NCBI RefSeq assembly: GCF_006345805.1
Contig: NW_021828690.1
Location: 1 to 7,915, forward strand
Length of the DNA: 7,915 nt
From: Octopus sinensis
Lineage: Eukaryota
Direction of reading: 5' to 3'
Position 1 is the first letter of the stretch. Every line of letters starts with the position of its first letter. A program made the translations under genes and the position numbers. Under the pieces are notes generated by a model that made no database searches, had not been told where the DNA came from, and saw only the letters and a list, made by a program, of their open reading frames with translations. Below are positions 1 through 7,915 of this stretch, piece after piece.

Positions 1-291
1 ATAAGGAAAGATATGGACAGGATGAACCAATCTAACCTAAAATCCTTATTGTGTCTTTAAGATACCAAACCATTCACTTAACCCTGTGCTATGACGTTTA
101 CTGCTATCCCTAAATGATGATAATGTTGGAAATTCTTTAGATAACTGGGAAGAGAGTGCACCAATGTAAAGTAGACATCGGTACCGCAAGAAATTTTACA
201 CTGGTATATAGAATTCTTGATGTTAGAATTATTAGACATAAATTTAATTCTGTTGGAGTTGTCCTCAGAGACCAAACCATGTTTTTATTGC

Positions 292-357
292 TATTATTAT
301 TATTATTATATTATTATTATTATTAGTTATTATTATTATTATTTTATTATTATTATA
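292..357. repeat. (TAT)n/(TAA)n trinucleotide microsatellite abutting the 3' end of the minus-strand SINE
   Basis: Directly visible imperfect tattattat run. Confidence 0.95.
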
Positions 358-577
358 TCAAGCAATGATAGGGGGACAAACAAACACCGCACACACCATA
401 TATATATACTATACGATGGGCTTCTTTCAGTTTCCATCTACCAAATCCACTCACAAGGTTTTGGTCGGCCCCTGGCTATAGTAGAAGATACTTGCCCAAG
501 ATATCACGCAGTGGAACTGAACCCGGAACCATGTGGTTGGTAAGCAAGCTACTTACCACACACCCACTCCTGCGCCC
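357..577 (-). mobile_element. tRNA-derived SINE with CORE-like central motif (octopus OR-type family), 3'-truncated
   Basis: Minus strand reads GGGCGCAGGAGTGGGTGTGTGGTAAGTAGCTTGCTTACCAACCACATGGTTCCGGGTTCAGTTCCACTGCG. It has an A-box-like TGGGTGTGTGG (556-566), a B-box-like GGTTCAGTTCC (513-523), a CORE-like CTTGGGCAAGT (490-500) and an internal (TA)/(TG) stretch. Family assignment is from recall of an abundant Octopus repeat, not from a search. Confidence 0.8.
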
Positions 578-623
578 TATTCTCCTGCATTGGTACTCAT
601 TCGTGAAATGAGTACTAGCCTCA

Positions 624-674
624 TGTGTGTTGTGTGTGTGTGTGTGTGTGTGTGAGAGAGTGAGACAGACAGAC

Positions 675-772
<98 letters not shown>
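624..772. repeat. Compound microsatellite (TG)n-(AG)n-(AGAC)n-(AGAT)24
   Basis: Directly visible; the perfect AGAT array is 675-770 (96 bp). Confidence 0.97.
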
Positions 773-1284
773 GGGGCATGCTTGCAGGCGTATATTACGT
801 ATATTACCATATGGCATTCTCCTGACCAGCTGTTGTCTGCGATAAGATCAGAACGACTTCATCACCTTCCGACATTATCGCACCTCCAGAGATGCCGAGC
901 AACAGTAATGGCGGGATTCTTCTGACCCTTATTGTTTTACTGTCTATCATCCATGCAGCCGCCACAACTAACTAGGTGCAGATGTAACCACTCCGATCGG
1001 GAAACAACTTGATTGTTTCACTACATACTGAGGACTTGTTTGCTTGTCTGTTTGTTCCTTTGTTTATCTCCCATTTTTGTTTTCCGTCATATATCTACCG
1101 TATTCAAGATGAAGTGTTTTCTACTTTCCTCTTATCACCACGAATTACCATCTTGCTATGCTCCCTAAGTCCTATGCCAGCTTCGTAAGTTATAAGAGAT
1201 CCAGCTACAAACGGAAACGTCCCACCTGTACACAGGGCATAGGATACTGGTTCGTTGTTCATTCCCCGATTCTTTCACACTGAG

Positions 1285-1462
1285 TTCAAATTTTGGCACA
1301 AGGCCAGCAATTTCGAGTGGGTGTAAGTCGATTTCACCGACGACCAGTGTTCAATTGGTACTTATTTTATCGACCCTGAAACGACGAAGTTGATTCCGGC
1401 AGCATTTGAACCCAGAATGGAAGCATTTTTCCAGTGCGGTAACGATTCTGCTACTCGTCGTC
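1285..1462 (-). mobile_element. tRNA-derived SINE, second family (Meta-domain-like centre), shorter variant
   Basis: Minus strand: A-box TAGCAGAATCG, B-box GGTTCAAATGC, central TTTCAGGGTCGATAAAATAAGTACCA, tail GCTGGCCTTGTGCCAAAATTTGAA. Alignable by eye to the copy at 2082-2302. Confidence 0.8.
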
Positions 1463-1495
1463 TTCCCCAACTCCTTCACAATGTAGATGTACATA

Positions 1496-1641
1496 CACTA
1501 GCGTAGTTAGAGTGTATGCCACCTGGGGCGACCCTTCCATTTATCACCTCTCCCCGGGCCCCATAAAAAACACATATTGCATACAGCGGACCCAAAAGTG
1601 CCGTCCCTTTAAAAGTGCTACTCGGGAGCGGACCGCTAGTG
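1496..1641. mobile_element. Non-autonomous hAT-like MITE (146 bp)
   Basis: Terminal inverted repeats CACTAGCG (1496-1503) / CGCTAGTG (1634-1641). Flanked by an 8-bp near-perfect direct repeat TGTACATA (1488-1495) / TGTACATG (1642-1649); 8-bp TSDs are characteristic of hAT elements. GC-rich interior. Confidence 0.7.
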
Positions 1642-1656
1642 TGTACATGTTGTTAC

Positions 1657-1657
<1 letters not shown>

Positions 1658-1719
<62 letters not shown>

Positions 1720-1735
1720 CGTGCGCGTGTGTGTG

Positions 1736-1768
<33 letters not shown>

Positions 1769-1787
1769 TGTGTGTGTGTGTGTGTGT
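1658..1787. repeat. (GT)n microsatellite with a short (GTGC) interruption
   Basis: Directly visible. Confidence 0.97.
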
Positions 1788-2081
1788 AAATCAAGACCAT
1801 AACCGTTAAGTGCTTATTTGAAAAAAGAAATCGCTTATAAGGTTAAAAAGAAATAAAAACTATCCGAACAAGTCAGGCATTCAAAACACCGTTGTCGCAA
1901 TATATGAATTCTTAGCGTAACGTCTTTTAAAGACAATTTAGACACCAACTAGAACAGGAACGATAGAAGTATAAAAAAAAAAATTAATCCAGGTAACAAG
2001 TGATATTGTCTCCCTGTATGCAAATTATTCTAGGAAATGCCCACCAGGGTTCCCGAAAAATATTGCATTATTAGATAACAA

Positions 2082-2302
2082 GGAGGCGGTCTGGCAGAAT
2101 TGTTAGCACGACGGGCAAAATACTTAGCGGCAGTTCGTCCGCCTTTACGCAATAAGTTCAAATTCCACCGAAGTAGACTTTGCCTTTCATTCTTTCGGGG
2201 GTCGATAAAAGAAGCATCAGACATGCATTGGGATCGATGCAATCGACTCGACTCCTTTCCCAAAATTTCAGACTGTGTGCCTATAGCATAGAAAGGATTA
2301 TT
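2082..2302 (+). mobile_element. tRNA-derived SINE, same family as 1285-1462, near full length
   Basis: A-box TGGCAGAATTG (2092-2102), B-box-like AGTTCAAATTCC (2155-2166), central GCCTTTCATTCTTTCGGGGGTCGATAAAA (Meta-domain-like, from recall), a TCGAT-GCA-ATCGA stem-loop and an ATTATT tail. Confidence 0.85.
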
Positions 2303-2436
2303 GCATAACAATTATATCTACTCTGAATGAGATTTTTGGCCGAAGTAAGCATCAAAACAAAATTTTTGCTTAAACATAGATCTTAATTACAGTACTTGAA
2401 GCAGGCAGAATAATATCAGTGTAGTAGGATTATAAC

Positions 2437-2780
2437 TTCTTTCTTTCTCTCATCTCTTCCCAACACCCGTATAAACTCTGTCTCTCTTTTCTCTCTCTCT
2501 CTCCCTCTCTCTCTCTTTCCCTCTCCCTCTCTCCCTCTCTCTCCTTCTCTCCCCCTCTCTCTCCCCCTCTCTCTCTATTCTACATTTCATCTCATTCATT
2601 CAAACACACACACACATCCACTTTCTTTGTCTCCCACTATCTCTCCAGTCCTCTCACTCAAACACATAGTCTCCATCTCTCCTCCTTTCTGTGTCTCTCC
2701 CTCTCTGACTCTCTCTCTCTCGCTTTCACTTCTCTCTCTCTATTTCTCTCGCACCCTCTCTTTCTCTCTCTTTCTGTCTT
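2437..2780. repeat. Degenerate (CT)n/(CTCC)n polypyrimidine tract with a short (CA)n
   Basis: Directly visible. Confidence 0.93.
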
Positions 2781-2799
2781 CCAATTTCTTATCTACCAC

Positions 2800-3245
2800 T
2801 CATGCACTTACATCTCTACAACGACACCACCACCACCTGTTCAGCAACCACGACTACCACTGCAACCACACTATCACTACCATGAATACACCACCGCACA
2901 ACTACAACCAACCAACACACCACCCCTACCACCATCATCTTCATCGACCACTACTCTACCCTCCACTATACTAATATCACCCCACCCCACCCACCACTGC
3001 CACCACCGCCGCCACCGCCACTACCAACGCCACCAACACTATGTTATGACCACTACTGCACTACCACAAGCACACAACTACTTCTCTACCACACCGCTGT
3101 ACAAGCACCATTATCCCCAACCACAACACGGTACCCTCACCACACCTCTATCCTTACATCACCAACACCACACGACCATTACTCCTCCACACCGCCACGC
3201 CTCCACACTTCTCCACGACCGCGGCCATTATTCACTAATTGCCGC
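2800..3245. repeat. Degenerate (CAC/ACC/ACT)n low-complexity tract
   Basis: Directly visible C/A-rich triplet periodicity. Confidence 0.85.
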
Positions 3246-3299
3246 CATTACTCCATTAAAACATATATTCAAATATCCCCTTTTTTTCTGTTTTACAAC

Positions 3300-3395
3300 T
3301 CATCTTCCATTCATTCAACCTCCTCCTCTCCCTTCTCCTCCTCCACATCATCATTATCATGCTCATTATCATCCTCATCATCATCATCATCCTCA

Positions 3396-3441
<46 letters not shown>

Positions 3442-3535
3442 CATCATCATCATCATCATCATTATCATCATCCTCATCATCATCATCCTCATTATTATTA
3501 TTATTATTATTATTATCATCCTCATTATCATCATC

Positions 3536-3578
<43 letters not shown>

Positions 3579-3715
3579 TATTATTATTATTATCATTATT
3601 ATTATCATCATCATCATTATTATCGTCACCCTCATTATTATTATTACCATTGTTGTTGTTGTTGTTGCTGTTACTGTTGTTGTTGTTACTGTTGCTGTTG
3701 TTGTTATTGTCTTCC
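3300..3715. repeat. Compound triplet array (CCT)-(CAT)n-(TAT)n-(GTT)n
   Basis: Directly visible; it is the source of the poly-H/Y/I/V ORFs in the track. Confidence 0.95.
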
Positions 3716-3837
3716 TCCTTCCTGTTCTTTTCCGTTGCCCAAATGTCTTGTCTTTATACAAAGTTCTTACTCAGAAATTGCTTCTGCCGTTCCTGAACTT
3801 CCTCCCAGTTATAAATCATCAATTCTATATGTACGTA

Positions 3838-3940
3838 ATGTATGTATGTATGTATGTATGTATGTATGTATGTATGTATGTATGTATGTATGTATGTATG
3901 TATGTATGCATGCATGTATGCATGTATGTGTGCATGTATG
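3838..3940. repeat. (TATG)n tetranucleotide microsatellite
   Basis: Directly visible. Confidence 0.96.
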
Positions 3941-3959
3941 AGTGAATATTTGTAAGAAC

Positions 3960-4066
3960 GTATAAATATAAATAAATATATATAATATAAACGTATGTAT
4001 GTATATATATATATGTGTGTATGTGTGTGTATGTATGTATGTGTATATATATATCTATATCTATAT

Positions 4067-4120
<54 letters not shown>

Positions 4121-4310
4121 CATTGCATGTGTGTGAGTGTGTATGTATATATTTATACGTAATATATAGATAGATCTATATCTATATATCTGCCCGTCTC
4201 TCTGTCTTTTCTGTCTTCTCTCTCTCTCTCTCTCTCTCTCTCTACCTTTACATACATACATATATACATATATGCATATATGTATATATATATATGTATA
4301 TATATATATG

Positions 4311-4353
<43 letters not shown>

Positions 4354-4495
4354 TATATATATATATTCGCACATTTATACGTATTTATATGTATATGTGT
4401 GTGTGTGTATATATATATATAAAACATACTTGTGAATGTGTGCGTTTGCATACACACATACATGTATGTATTTTTGCCTTTGTAATTATATACAA
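3960..4495. repeat. Compound (TA)n/(TG)n/(CT)n/(CATA)n simple-repeat tract
   Basis: Directly visible. Confidence 0.93.
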
Positions 4496-5029
4496 TTGTA
4501 TAACTTCGCGTCTGTTATGTTCGGTTTTGTGCGATCCGTTTCGGAGAATATAAATACTACGTAGCTACATTTGTATTCTTTTATCGCATCTACCTACGGA
4601 ACGCCTGCAAATTCTTCAAGGCAGGAAATGTTAACCAAGCACCCTTAGCAAAGGCAACAATAACAGATAACCCCCTTCACAAGAGTTGCAAGGAGAGAGG
4701 CAAAACAAAAGAAGAGAAAAGACCTAGAAAACAAAAGAAAACGATATGAAAGAAAGGAAACCAAGGATATAAGAGACAATTCAAGAAAACTAGCAAAAGA
4801 GCCAAAAAGCAGAAACATTCTCTCGACGGTTTTCTTATCGTTACTCGGCATTGTAGAATGCAGAAAGTTTGGGTCAAGAGCTGAAAGAAGAATATTTATT
4901 TGTTTCTTCGGAGAAGCTTGTTATAATGGAAAGGATGTTACTGAAAGCGAAAGTGAAGTATATCAGCTGATGGTTTGGATAGATCGACACAACGAACACA
5001 AAAATGCATCTACCATTAAATATGTACGT

Positions 5030-5083
5030 AAACACACATGTGTATGTTTATACACACACACACGCACACTCACTCAAACACAA

Positions 5084-5131
<48 letters not shown>

Positions 5132-5165
5132 TATATAGATATATATATAGATATATACATATATT
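5030..5165. repeat. (CA)n followed by (TA/TAGA)n
   Basis: Directly visible. Confidence 0.95.
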
Positions 5166-5531
5166 AAGAAGATGGAATGAATAGGATTTAATCACAAATC
5201 ACAACAATTGTTTCTGTGCATTAATAACAGTTGTTAGTCGCTGAATTTTCTATTCCATATTATTACTTAATTATTATGCAAAAAAAATATCATCCAGCAG
5301 TAGTTATATACCCGCACGTCATCAGGTGAGTGGCTTTGAGAGCAATGCACAGAAACAATTGTTGTTTTGTGATTAAAGCTATTTTGTATGAATTTTGCGT
5401 TCACCAAAGAATTTTCATATGTATATCCAGTACATGGAGTATGGTGGCATATGGTAGCCGATATCTGTATAGGAACTTTGAAATGCACATTATGAGGTTA
5501 TTACTCAGATGAGTATATATATATATATATA

Positions 5532-5612
5532 TTACTCTTTTACTTATTCCAGTCATTGAACTGCGGCCATGCTGGAGCACCACCTTTGGTCGAACGAATC
5601 GACTCAGGATTA
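5532..5612 (-). mobile_element. Isolated 3' tail of a SINE, probably the same family as 357-577
   Basis: Minus strand: CCTGAGTCGATTCGTTCGACCAAAGGTGGTGCTCCAGCATGGCCGCAGTTCAATGACTGGAATAAGTAAAAGAGTAA, followed by (TA)n. It matches my recollection of the Octopus SINE 3' end; the family link is an inference. Confidence 0.7.
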
Positions 5613-5767
5613 AGAACTGAAAAGGTGCAGGTTTTTAAAAAAGATACATACTCTGCTTTGTGTATTGAGTCACAATTTAAGAAAATCCAGAATATATGTC
5701 TGCCCGCATGTGTGAATATATGTGAGTGTGCGTAGATGTGGTTCTGAACATGTGAACAAACGTGTAC

Positions 5768-5772
5768 ATACA

Positions 5773-5813
<41 letters not shown>

Positions 5814-5815
5814 GT
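5768..5815. repeat. (CA)n microsatellite
   Basis: Directly visible. Confidence 0.95.
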
Positions 5816-6054
5816 ATAGAGTGTTTGAAGTGGTGTACAACTAAAAGCATCATATGTGAGAAGTACTGCTCACTGCATACCAGTAAAATCTCGTTACCTG
5901 GATATATAAAATTTCAGCATTTTTTCAGACGCTGATGTCGTAAATAACCAGAAGGCTTATTAAAAATTAATTATTACCGATGGAAGCATAAAACCAAAAC
6001 AATGAAAGTTATAAGAAAGAATACAAGTCTCAATAGTTTGTATTTTTACATTAT

Positions 6055-6094
6055 ATTTCAGTATTTCGGGGTTAGTGACCCTTCTTCAGGAAAT
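6055..6094 (-). ncRNA. Minimal type I hammerhead ribozyme motif (Penelope-like), with one core substitution
   Basis: Minus-strand RNA: AUUUC-CUGAAGA-A-GGG-UCACUAAC-CCC-GAA-AUAC-U-GAAAU. This gives stem I AUUUC/GAAAU (5 bp), core CUGANGA, stem II GGG/CCC, core GAAA and a loopless stem III AUAC (the canonical palindromic form would be AUAU). Confidence 0.7.
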
Positions 6095-6179
6095 CTTCAG
6101 AGAAATCGCGTTTTGAGTTGATTTCTCTACTCTAACATCATTTCTCCGAAAATCTTTCGCCACTATTCTTCCTTCTTAT

Positions 6180-6688
6180 TTACTTCTGATATCTAGGAAT
6201 TGATATTAATCACCCAGCCTGGTATTTTAAGCAAAAATAAAGACCCTGAAATCTATCGAAAATTTCTCTGTGTGGCTCATTTAGTTTGACTAATACACTT
6301 GTAGGCCATCTTCTGATATTCTCTTTTCCTTCTCCAATTCAGAGAGGCTTGGAAACTGGAAGAATTGAAAGCGGCTTGTGTTAAATTTGAATTACTCTAA
6401 ATTGGATAGAAACGTGGAAAGGGCTGGTTTTACTTTGATAAAGTTTCACCTCATTTCCAGTTGTAAATTAACTTCATTGAACTTTGTGAATGCCATGTAA
6501 GCAATGTAACGTTAGCAATCCCATGCTAGCTGTTTCTTAGTTAATTAGAATCTTGGAAGAATTCAAAAATTGTTTTAAAAAGGAAATGAACACATCTCTG
6601 ACAGTTTCCCTTTTGTCAACCTTCGAAATTCTGTGAGCAACAATAAATGTTCAAAATCTTTATCATTCTCAGTCAGGAATTGAGAGCA
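6180..6688 (-). pseudogene. Decayed hAT (Buster/Charlie-like) DNA transposase fragment with stops and frameshifts
   Basis: Manual translation gives SQFLTENDKDFEHLLLLTEFRRLTKG (compare the family motif LLxHTEVRWLSxG), then IAYMAFTKFNEVNLQL, NFIKVKPALSTFLSNL, FFQFPSLSELEKEKRISEDGLQVY, DRFQGL and IPGWVIN (6205-6225; compare IPDWVINPF). These appear in the expected order. Homology may extend to about 6130. Confidence 0.85.
6298..6518. repeat. Inverted repeat, left arm (221 bp; original locus within the hAT fossil)
   Basis: Reverse complement of 7041-7258, differing by 6 substitutions and one 3-nt indel (counted by eye). Confidence 0.97.
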
Positions 6689-6968
6689 TGTGGTGTGTGC
6701 GAGATAGTTGATATATAAAGGCACCTACCTTCTCTTCGCTCCGATAGAGACCCTTCAGTGGTAACGGATCCTTCGTCACAGCCCCGACCCGAACGCTAAA
6801 GATAGCAGCTGCTTCACCCAACCTTAGCAACGTCTTCACACGTCTTAACACCTCGACGACCCACTTTGGAAAAGCCGAAATCCCCGCTGCCTGCGCACGC
6901 CTCACTGCTGTCCCTTCCGGTTGCCCCAGCTTCCGGTCAACGCACCCAGCTGCAGACGTCATCCCACA
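6689..6968 (-). repeat. 3' LTR (280 bp)
   Basis: On the minus strand it starts TGTGG at 6968, immediately after the PPT, and ends CCACA at 6689, a 5-bp terminal inverted repeat. The hAT reading frame resumes exactly at 6688. The partner LTR is not in the window. Confidence 0.75.
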
Positions 6969-6981
6969 CGCCACCCTGATC
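6969..6981 (-). other. Degenerate polypurine tract (PPT)
   Basis: GATCAGGGTGGCG lies between the pol stop (TAA, 6984-6982) and the LTR TG. Confidence 0.6.
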
Positions 6982-6984
6982 TTA

Positions 6985-7044
6985 AAGATCACAATCTCTC
7001 CGCTCCATGTCGTAGTCCACCATCCAACCGGGAGGGCGCCTTGC
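6985..7044. repeat. 60-bp direct repeat, copy 1
   Basis: 58/60 identical to 7256-7315. Confidence 0.97.
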
Positions 7045-7258
7045 TAACGTAACATTGCTTACATGGCATTCACAAAGATCAATGAAGTTAATTTGCAACT
7101 GGAAATGAGGTGAAACTTTATCAAAGTAAAACCAGCCCTTTCCCCGTTTCTATCCAATTTAGAGTAATTCAAATTTAACACAAGCCGCCTTCAATTCTTC
7201 CAGTTTTCAAGCCTCTCTGAATTGGAGAAGAAGAGAATATCAGAAGATGGCCTACAAG
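7041..7258. repeat. Inverted repeat, right arm (218 bp; inserted inverted copy of the hAT fragment)
   Basis: Reverse complement of 6298-6518. It is AT-rich sequence embedded in GC-rich retroelement DNA. Confidence 0.97.
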
Positions 7259-7315
7259 ATCACAATCTCTCCGCTCCATGTCGTAGTCGACCATCCAACC
7301 GCGAGGGCGCCTTGC
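7256..7315. repeat. 60-bp direct repeat, copy 2
   Basis: 58/60 identical to 6985-7044. Confidence 0.97.
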
Positions 7316-7915
7316 GCGTCAAGATCTTCTTAAGCTGGGCACCTCGTTCTCCCCCTCTCCAGAATCGTAGTCCGTCGAAGCGACAATCCTGCAAAGGTCC
7401 AAGACGTGTCGCGGCATTCCATCCACGGATACGTTGTTTCTGGAATTGACCGCCGTCACCGTTCCTCTGCTCCATTGAGACGTACAGCGCGCCTTTGGTG
7501 GCTTAACCCAGACTTCCTCCCCTATTTTTCGCGAACGGGTCCCTTCTCTTCCTCGTGACCCTCCGGCGCTTTGCTCGGGTGCCACTATCATATTTGAAAC
7601 ACAGCTCTCTGCGGCACAGATCCTCAGCTTGTCCGGATCGGGGAGACAAGTTGTACAAAAAACTGCTTCAAGCGGCGAAATGTGCCCTCTTTCGCGCTAT
7701 GGCCTTGACTGTCCGATAGTGCCTCTCCACGATCCCGTTACCGCGGGCCTATACGTTGCTCTGAAAAAACGACGCACATTCCACCGATCAAGCATAACCC
7801 TCAATGCTTCCGAACGAAACGCCGCCTCGTTTGTCCATCAGTAGTTCTTCCAAGGGAAATCCTCTCTATAAAAATATCCCGTTCTGGATCTGCGCGATCT
7901 CGTCAGCAATGCCCG
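7256..7915 (-). pseudogene. pol: Decayed retrotransposon integrase (catalytic core plus C-terminal domain)
   Basis: Reconstructed translation LEELLMD(N)EAAFRSEALRVMLDRWNVRRFFRATYRPA(G)NGIVERHYRTVKAIA has D (7835-7833) and E (7727-7725) at D-x35-E spacing across two compensating frameshifts. It continues SPLEAVFLYNLSP, then IGEEVWVKPPKARCTSQWSRGTVTAVNSRNNVSVDGMPRHVLD (track ORF 7319-7591) and the tail LRRS*RARRPxGWMVDY. In-frame stops at 7868-7866 and 7321-7319. Confidence 0.88.

Follow-up and report, generated by a model that had tools for sequence, protein, structure and literature searches.

The window analysed here is a stretch of 7,915 nucleotides from Octopus sinensis (contig NW_021828690.1, positions 1 to 7,915 of the forward strand), and it carries part of a degraded mollusc-type long terminal repeat (LTR) retrotransposon on its minus strand. 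At the end of the pol gene of this element, a 60-nt segment (B) is present twice in direct orientation, and the two copies are separated by an inverted copy (A') of a segment (A) that is also retained at its original site. This B-A'-B arrangement probably arose in one step, through a fold-back or MMBIR-type (break-induced replication mediated by microhomology) switch of template and return, made by a host polymerase after the element had integrated, during replication or break repair. The initial annotation of this DNA had proposed a template switch. The analysis supports a refined version of that proposal, in which the copied segment most probably came from the host flank and the switch points occur in an order that suits MMBIR or break repair.

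Repeats and junctions at the end of pol

The rearrangement comprises the following segments:

6298..6518, plus strand: A, the template (source) segment, 221 nt, recognized by its reverse-complement match and host-like composition
6985..7044, minus strand: B1, the last 20 pol codons (…ARRPPGWMVDYDMERRDCDL*), recognized by translation and the C-terminal motif of relatives
7041..7044, unstranded: TTGC, the microhomology at junction 1, from direct reading and alignments
7041..7258, plus strand: A', the inverted templated insertion, 218 nt, from repeat search, alignment and composition
7256..7258, unstranded: AAG, the microhomology at junction 2, from direct reading and alignments
7256..7315, minus strand: B2, the second copy of the last 20 pol codons (RARRPRGWMVDYDMERRDCDL), from repeat search, translation and alignment

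The two copies of B (6985-7044 and 7256-7315) are 60 nt long and identical at 58 positions, with a start-to-start spacing of 271 nt. A (6298-6518, 221 nt) and A' (7041-7258, 218 nt) match as reverse complements at 97% identity, and their pairwise alignment contains six substitutions and one 3-nt indel near 6329/7230. Because of this indel, the repeat finder reported the match in two parts (190 nt at 97% and 33 nt at 94%). A match of 218 nt at 97% cannot be attributed to chance. In the A/A' and B/B alignments, homology is lost sharply at all four repeat edges. Direct reading shows that the adjoining segments overlap at both junctions: TTGC (7041-7044) is common to the end of B1 and the start of A', and AAG (7256-7258) is common to the end of A' and the start of B2. 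The joint chance of overlaps of at least 4 nt and at least 3 nt is ~8e-4. The template was kept at its original site, 522 nt from the insertion point, and the B-A'-B arrangement represents a net gain of 271 nt. These coordinates, the size of the gain and both microhomologies had been given in the initial annotation, and the repeat search, the pairwise alignments and direct reading confirmed them.

On the minus strand, B corresponds to the last 20 codons of pol, and B1 is followed directly by the stop codon TAA (6984-6982). The C-terminal motif RP-R-RRPP-W--DY-M-...stop was found in 12 of 16 aligned relatives and is single in all of these; P0008, P0025, P0026 and P0027, the remaining four, stop short of the motif or do not have it. 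Since B encodes the last 20 pol codons and its motif is single in the relatives, two copies of B would be the derived state. By the same comparison A' appears to be the derived copy, because it lies between duplicates of a motif that is single elsewhere. The expectation that relatives would carry a single B and no A' is thus borne out (no A-like insert was found in them) among relatives that are only 42-58% identical. An exact look-up of four open reading frames (ORFs) of the window, made for a pre-insertion allele, found none on record. B2 is distinguished from B1 by one Pro-to-Arg change and one synonymous change, and the reading frame of B2 continues into A' for 26 further codons. The event had also been placed in the last codons of the integrase and just upstream of the polypurine tract (PPT), and both placements agree with the data: B is the tail of minus-strand pol, and the stop, the PPT and the LTR start come directly after it.

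The initial annotation described the divergence of the two duplications as similar. This is true (2.8% for A/A' vs 3.3% for B/B, Fisher p = 0.68), in a test of low power with only 2 differences in B, and the similarity is compatible with one event as a weak argument.

The element and the boundary of its LTR

The features of the element and its flank are as follows:

6519..6688, unstranded: spacer between A and the putative element end, 170 nt, from composition; left of the GC change-point
6689..6968, minus strand: putative 3' LTR, 280 nt, sense 5'-TGTGGGATG ... CACACCACA-3', with its start placed by a conserved motif and its end by inference
6969..6990, minus strand: palindrome and PPT, sense GATCTT-T-AAGATC AGGGTGGCG, from direct reading and seven relatives
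7319..7321, minus strand: in-frame TGA that breaks pol 4 nt upstream of B2, with …VPSLRRS*RARRP… as the translation in minus frame 0
7322..7915, minus strand: integrase C-terminal region of the degraded LTR retrotransposon, from translation and homology to molluscan Pol/integrase

The element has an integrase-bearing pol followed by a PPT and then by an LTR that starts with TG, as in LTR retrotransposons. GC content climbs to 55-65% from about 6700 to 7915. A minus-strand frame is open from 7696 to 7322 and ends ...IGEEVWVKPPKARCTSQWSRGTVTAVNSRNNVSVDGMPRHVLDL...RRS; from 7915 to 7697, frameshifts and stops occur, and the end of the integrase core (…NGIVERHYRTVKA…) is spread over three frames. 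The integrase region matched Pol/integrase fragments of Octopus bimaculoides, Elysia marginata, Plakobranchus ocellatus and marine metagenomes (E = 7e-24 to 3e-11), with 42-58% identity over the whole alignment and up to 77% in local BLAST matches; a close family member was not among these matches. Residues T72, W75, G78, S85, N87, N88 and V91-H97 (VDGMPRH) are invariant in the alignment with the relatives. Pfam models gave no match to pieces of the window. The relatives have the domains RVP/Asp_protease, RVT_1, DUF7047, RNase_H (PF00075) and Integrase_H2C2, in this order where one locus shows it; such an order would fit BEL/Pao and retrovirus-like elements as well as gypsy, the label used in the initial annotation. 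Protein-guided locus searches returned 27 distant metagenomic loci and zero viral ones. A spurious ORF of 124 codons spans B1 and the LTR.

The start of the LTR can be read from a block shared with relatives. In the window, the pol stop TAA (6982-6984) lies at the centre of a palindrome, and the sense order is TGTGATCTT-TAA-GATCAGGGTGGCG and then the LTR start TGTGGGATG. The palindrome GATCTT-N-AAGATC, a G-rich tract and an LTR start of the form TGT(G/T/A)(G/T) occur in the same order in the window (6969-6993, minus strand) and in seven related loci: L001 (10714-10731), L002 (630-656), L003 (668-694), L004 (1319-1345) and, with approximate coordinates, L005 (about 9520-9545), L019 (about 1817-1848) and L022 (about 1301-1334). 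L001, a 67-kb contig in ENA, holds the relative with both LTRs, which are 380 nt long (TGTTG...CAACA), and alignment of these LTRs puts the start of its 3' LTR at ...GATCAGGGGGGCG followed by TGTTGTG. As the window shares the succession of palindrome, PPT and LTR start motif with these relatives, its 3' LTR starts at 6968 and runs to lower coordinates. A purine run on the reverse complement of 6724-6742 was at first taken as the PPT; the relatives place the PPT and LTR start right after the pol stop, and the run is the motif near the LTR end that is also present in L001 (below).

Several further observations concern this block and its relatives. The Elysia version of the palindrome before the PPT is GATTTTAAAATC, and a search for an LTR pair at the Elysia locus (L005) found none. 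The L001 element is 5.2 kb long and has non-LTR retrotransposon genes (Exo_endo_phos and RVT_1) on both sides (1-520 and 15298-20618); its host DNA is dense in repeats, like that of the window. In L031, a metagenomic relative (1940-2138), pol and the 3' untranslated region are collinear with L022 up to about 1940, and about 150 nt beyond this point the palindrome-PPT-LTR-start block is found inverted (46 nt, 85% identical to L022 1301-1346). This inverted block belongs either to two elements arranged tail to tail or to a further inverted rearrangement at this position.

The other end of the LTR decides whether A lies inside or outside the element. Three candidate ends of the TG type are available, at 6689, 6300 and 6271. 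The terminal inverted repeat (TIR) matches at 7/9 positions for the 6689 end (TGTGGTGTG against TGTGGGATG) and at 5/9 for both the 6300 and the 6271 end. The maximum-likelihood change-point in GC content is at 6720 (support interval 6716-6738, delta-lnL 20.4). The segment 6689-6968 has a GC content of 0.56 and a CpG observed/expected (o/e) ratio of 0.99, and pol has values of 0.54 and 1.24. To the left, 6300-6688 has values of 0.35 and 0.34, and the DNA further left has 0.34 and 0.69; within this region, A has 0.36 and 0.42 and the spacer 6519-6688 has 0.33 and 0.22. The inserted copy A' resembles the host flank in composition, with a GC content of 0.37 and a CpG o/e of 0.40 vs 0.54-0.58 and 0.9-1.2 in the element sequence around it.

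A motif shared with the relative that has both LTRs also bears on this end. GAAGGTA(A/G)GT is found 33 nt before the 6689 end (window 6732-6741, minus strand), and in L001 (6245-6254 and 11066-11075) it precedes the proven LTR end by 24 nt. Chance would give about one match in all 132 kb searched. The motif is similar to a splice donor and may be a conserved U5 signal or a splice donor. Aligned globally, the window and L001 LTRs gave essentially no further information, as they are too diverged. A blastn search of the window LTR against 32 related loci matched only the short PPT motif, and an exact PPT-LTR 22-mer was absent from the JGI metagenome and IMG/VR contigs.

The 3' LTR thus very probably spans 6689-6968 (280 nt). 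Since the TIR, the break in GC and CpG and the shared motif at the end of U5 all put the LTR end at 6689, A most probably sits in host-like DNA, 170 nt outside the element. With A outside the LTR and A' having the composition of the host flank, the polarity of the event follows: host flank was copied into the element. If the LTR is 280 nt long, the event would be post-integration and chromosomal and not an accident of reverse transcription. The position of A in host DNA favours a host polymerase over a reverse transcriptase.

Proposed template switching and its alternatives

The preferred mechanism begins with a 3' end that would have copied the tail of pol up to ...CCTTGC (7044) before leaving its template. 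The freed end would pair through TTGC/GCAA (6515-6518) on the same-sense strand, 526 nt behind; this strand may be either the other parental strand or, in a fold-back, the single-stranded tail of the end itself. Synthesis would then proceed from 6518 back to 6298, in the host DNA just outside the element, until a second release. Re-annealing through AAG at 6985, 60 nt behind the point of departure, would cause B to be copied again. The predicted product is B, inverted A and B; a mirror-image path on the other strand would yield the same product. The repeat geometry, both microhomologies and the host-like composition of A' are observed; the polymerase, the pathway, the direction of synthesis and the place of A outside the LTR are what we infer.

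The point of return (6985) is the first base of the second arm of the palindrome at the pol stop. A second AAGATC lies five bases past B2 (window 7321-7334), inside the palindromes AAGATCTT and CTTAAG, so that the ancestral B was bracketed by two copies of AAGATC. These two copies may have led the ...CAAG 3' end to re-anneal in the wrong place.

With the switch points numbered 1 (7044), 2 (6518), 3 (6298) and 4 (6985), their order along the chromosome is 3-2-4-1. Conformations in which point 4 comes before point 1 are reported as unobserved among short human-chimp events and would need the re-opening of the new duplex (PMC5453318). As the return precedes the departure, the template behind the polymerase must be single-stranded again. 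Such a template is expected in the migrating D-loop of break-induced replication (BIR), as in MMBIR, or at resected break ends, and not at an ordinary fork. [quoted passage not shown]

Known systems share parts of this picture. An MMBIR templated insertion has as its signature the inverted copy of a template close by, with microhomologies on either side (PMC8421209). As in the templated insertions (MMB-TI) of MMBIR and of fork stalling and template switching (FoSTeS), the window has an inverted copy of a retained nearby sequence, microhomology at both junctions and a gain in copy number of flanking sequence. In the MMB-TI catalogue, however, templates lie within 100 bp and inserts are of read length (PMC8421209), whereas the present insert measures 218 nt and its template lies at a distance of 522 nt. 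The 100-bp template limit of MMBSearch, beyond which the present case falls, belongs to the search tool and is not mechanistic. The MMB-TI cases are somatic or disease alleles, while the present one is an old germline event in an invertebrate retrotransposon.

The four-point template switch (Löytynoja and Goldman, 2017; PMC5453318) likewise has four points, a reverse-complemented fragment from point 2 to point 3 and a new inverted repeat able to form a hairpin. The order 3-2-4-1 is absent from its high-confidence human-chimp events, and the present event is about ten times larger in scale. Fold-back synthesis at resected breaks has been shown to give inverted insertions of up to about 150 bp (PMC11724301). 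In that process, as proposed here, a 3' end finds an inverted microhomology within its own single-stranded tail and primes there; after extension and unwinding, it is joined to the other end through 0-5 nt of microhomology. Most of the yeast fold-back events measure 5-34 bp, and their loop is about 41 nt, in contrast to 218 nt and a 522-nt loop, and fold-back synthesis must additionally account for the 60-nt duplication. Rearrangements of the DUP-TRP/INV-DUP type (PMC11293582) also have a direct duplication around an inverted copy and iterative template switches. They extend over kilobases to megabases, with the first switch at pre-existing inverted low-copy repeats, whereas the present event covers tens to hundreds of bases and used microhomology only.

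Polymerase theta, acting in theta-mediated end joining (TMEJ), leaves short inserts (tens of nucleotides) templated from the immediate flanks of a break, and for this enzyme an insert of 218 nt and a template distance of 522 nt are both large. The template switch of the initial annotation is upheld in its geometry, its microhomologies and its fit to MMBIR, and each of its predictions that the data could address came out in its favour.

Several points weigh against a host template switch after integration. The end of the LTR is itself inferred, as the 5' LTR lies beyond the window, and other TG-type ends exist at 6300, which coincides with the edge of A, and at 6271. A longer LTR would be a better fit to the TATA-like run that lies 21-27 nt before the 6689 end. 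The ancestral state is inferred only from families that are 42-58% identical in protein, and the argument from equal divergence is low in power. Both the distance of the template and the length of the insert exceed the events in the surveys cited above.

The longer LTR would open the way to an accident at the complementary DNA (cDNA) stage of reverse transcription, which we consider unlikely. It needs a 3' LTR that extends to about 6300, with A as its terminal (R-)U5. In one version, nascent minus-strand DNA (window plus strand, 6300 to 6968 to 7044) would fold back at 6518, the copy would run off the tip of the LTR, and the end would then re-anneal to the co-packaged RNA 60 nt back. In another, a cDNA fragment of the LTR end would be captured at a break or half-integrated.

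Reverse transcriptases readily switch templates, and two RNA templates make it natural for the return to fall behind the point of departure. A TG at 6300-6301, only 2 nt from the outer edge of A (6298), would supply the LTR end ...GGCCTACA; this end matches the LTR start TGTGGG at 5/6 positions, and the ambiguity of the AAG junction lets A' end exactly on its CA. The TATA-like run (6710-6716) would suit a U3/R border near 6685. The pol frame runs into A' and the PPT and LTR are intact, so the variant could still have transposed. However, GC and CpG o/e break sharply near 6720, with 6300-6688 resembling the host DNA further left, and the 6689 end has both the better TIR (7/9) and the motif placed as at the proven LTR end of L001. 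In the relative with both LTRs, the LTR measures 380 nt and not about 670 nt. No sequence like a primer binding site follows the supposed tip in A', and the two extra matching bases (AG) must be a coincidence (1 in 16).

The idea of a reverse-transcriptase fold-back at the LTR tip was downgraded on account of composition, CpG, the inverted repeat and the motif, which put the LTR end at 6689. That the LTR reaches 6300 and A' is the copied tip of the element's own minus-strand DNA, a fossil of reverse-transcriptase self-priming, is improbable. If it were true, the structure might be heritable within the family, with pol, the PPT and the LTR remaining usable.

A could also be an independent mobile unit (a SINE, a MITE or other) inserted twice, with the 60-nt repeat as an unusually long target site duplication (TSD). 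This is very improbable. A discrete segment inside a direct repeat formally resembles a transposon insertion, and genomes of this kind are rich in repeats, but the copies lie 522 nt apart in inverted orientation with ends at identical positions, and microhomology with the target is present at both junctions. Direct reading of the copy at 6298-6518 found no TSD, TIR or A-rich or microsatellite tail. A contains no ORF, had no match to transfer RNA (tRNA) or Rfam models even at E <= 1 and has no head like that of tRNA, 5S or 7SL, as a pol III-type unit would have. In two weak tests, the JGI metagenome and IMG/VR contigs did not contain an exact 22-mer of A, and blastn of A against the 32 related loci (about 124 kb) found no A-like DNA.

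Two separate events, with a 60-nt tandem duplication of B and a later insertion of an inverted copy of A at the repeat junction, have an equally slight chance. Tandem duplications are common, and the divergence data cannot separate one event from two. The insertion would nevertheless have to hit the junction of the two B copies exactly, with overlap on both sides, and a template switch would still be needed to make A', which is less parsimonious than one switch and return. Inverted chimeric junctions are a known class of artefact, but a chimera of assembly or amplification (a fold-back read or a multiple displacement amplification artefact) is extremely unlikely, as the copies differ by 8 substitutions and one 3-nt indel (~3%), a pattern of evolutionary divergence that the initial annotation had likewise held against an assembly artefact.

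A host template switch, if this is what occurred, left an unusually legible natural case of switch and return, in which the junctions, the template, the 60-nt stretch copied twice and the polarity can all be read from one sequence. The conserved C-terminus of pol provides an outside check on the ancestral state. A class of switch-point order reported as unobserved in the short primate events is documented here at a scale of hundreds of bases; this class points to synthesis during BIR or break repair. The general picture is unchanged, as the mechanism was already known.

Consequences and other features of the window

The event has created a 218-bp inverted repeat, 97% complementary, that brackets the whole 3' LTR (fold -529 kcal/mol, z = -35), and it shows how template switches build long inverted repeats around the ends of transposons. 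A read-through transcript is predicted to fold into long double-stranded RNA, a possible source of small interfering RNAs against the family. As a mutation the rearrangement is of a known kind, the element that it struck is dead, and no function is implied.

Most of the window consists of AT-rich DNA laden with microsatellites, including (TG)n, (AGAT)n, (CT)n, (ATT)n, (TATG)n, (TA)n and (AC)n. Between 2400 and 3700, strand asymmetry is extreme (GC skew down to -0.97), with low-complexity tracts rich in CT, CCA/CCG and ATT/ATC. The asymmetry produces a spurious stop-free frame of 505 codons (2428-3942), which had only sub-threshold Pfam matches. Further on, 3828-4450 has a GC content of 19-23%, with (TATG)n and (TA)n and imperfect inverted repeats of 120-136 nt. 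These repeats (3985-4120 vs 4277-4412) are 75-82% complementary and represent palindromic DNA derived from microsatellites.

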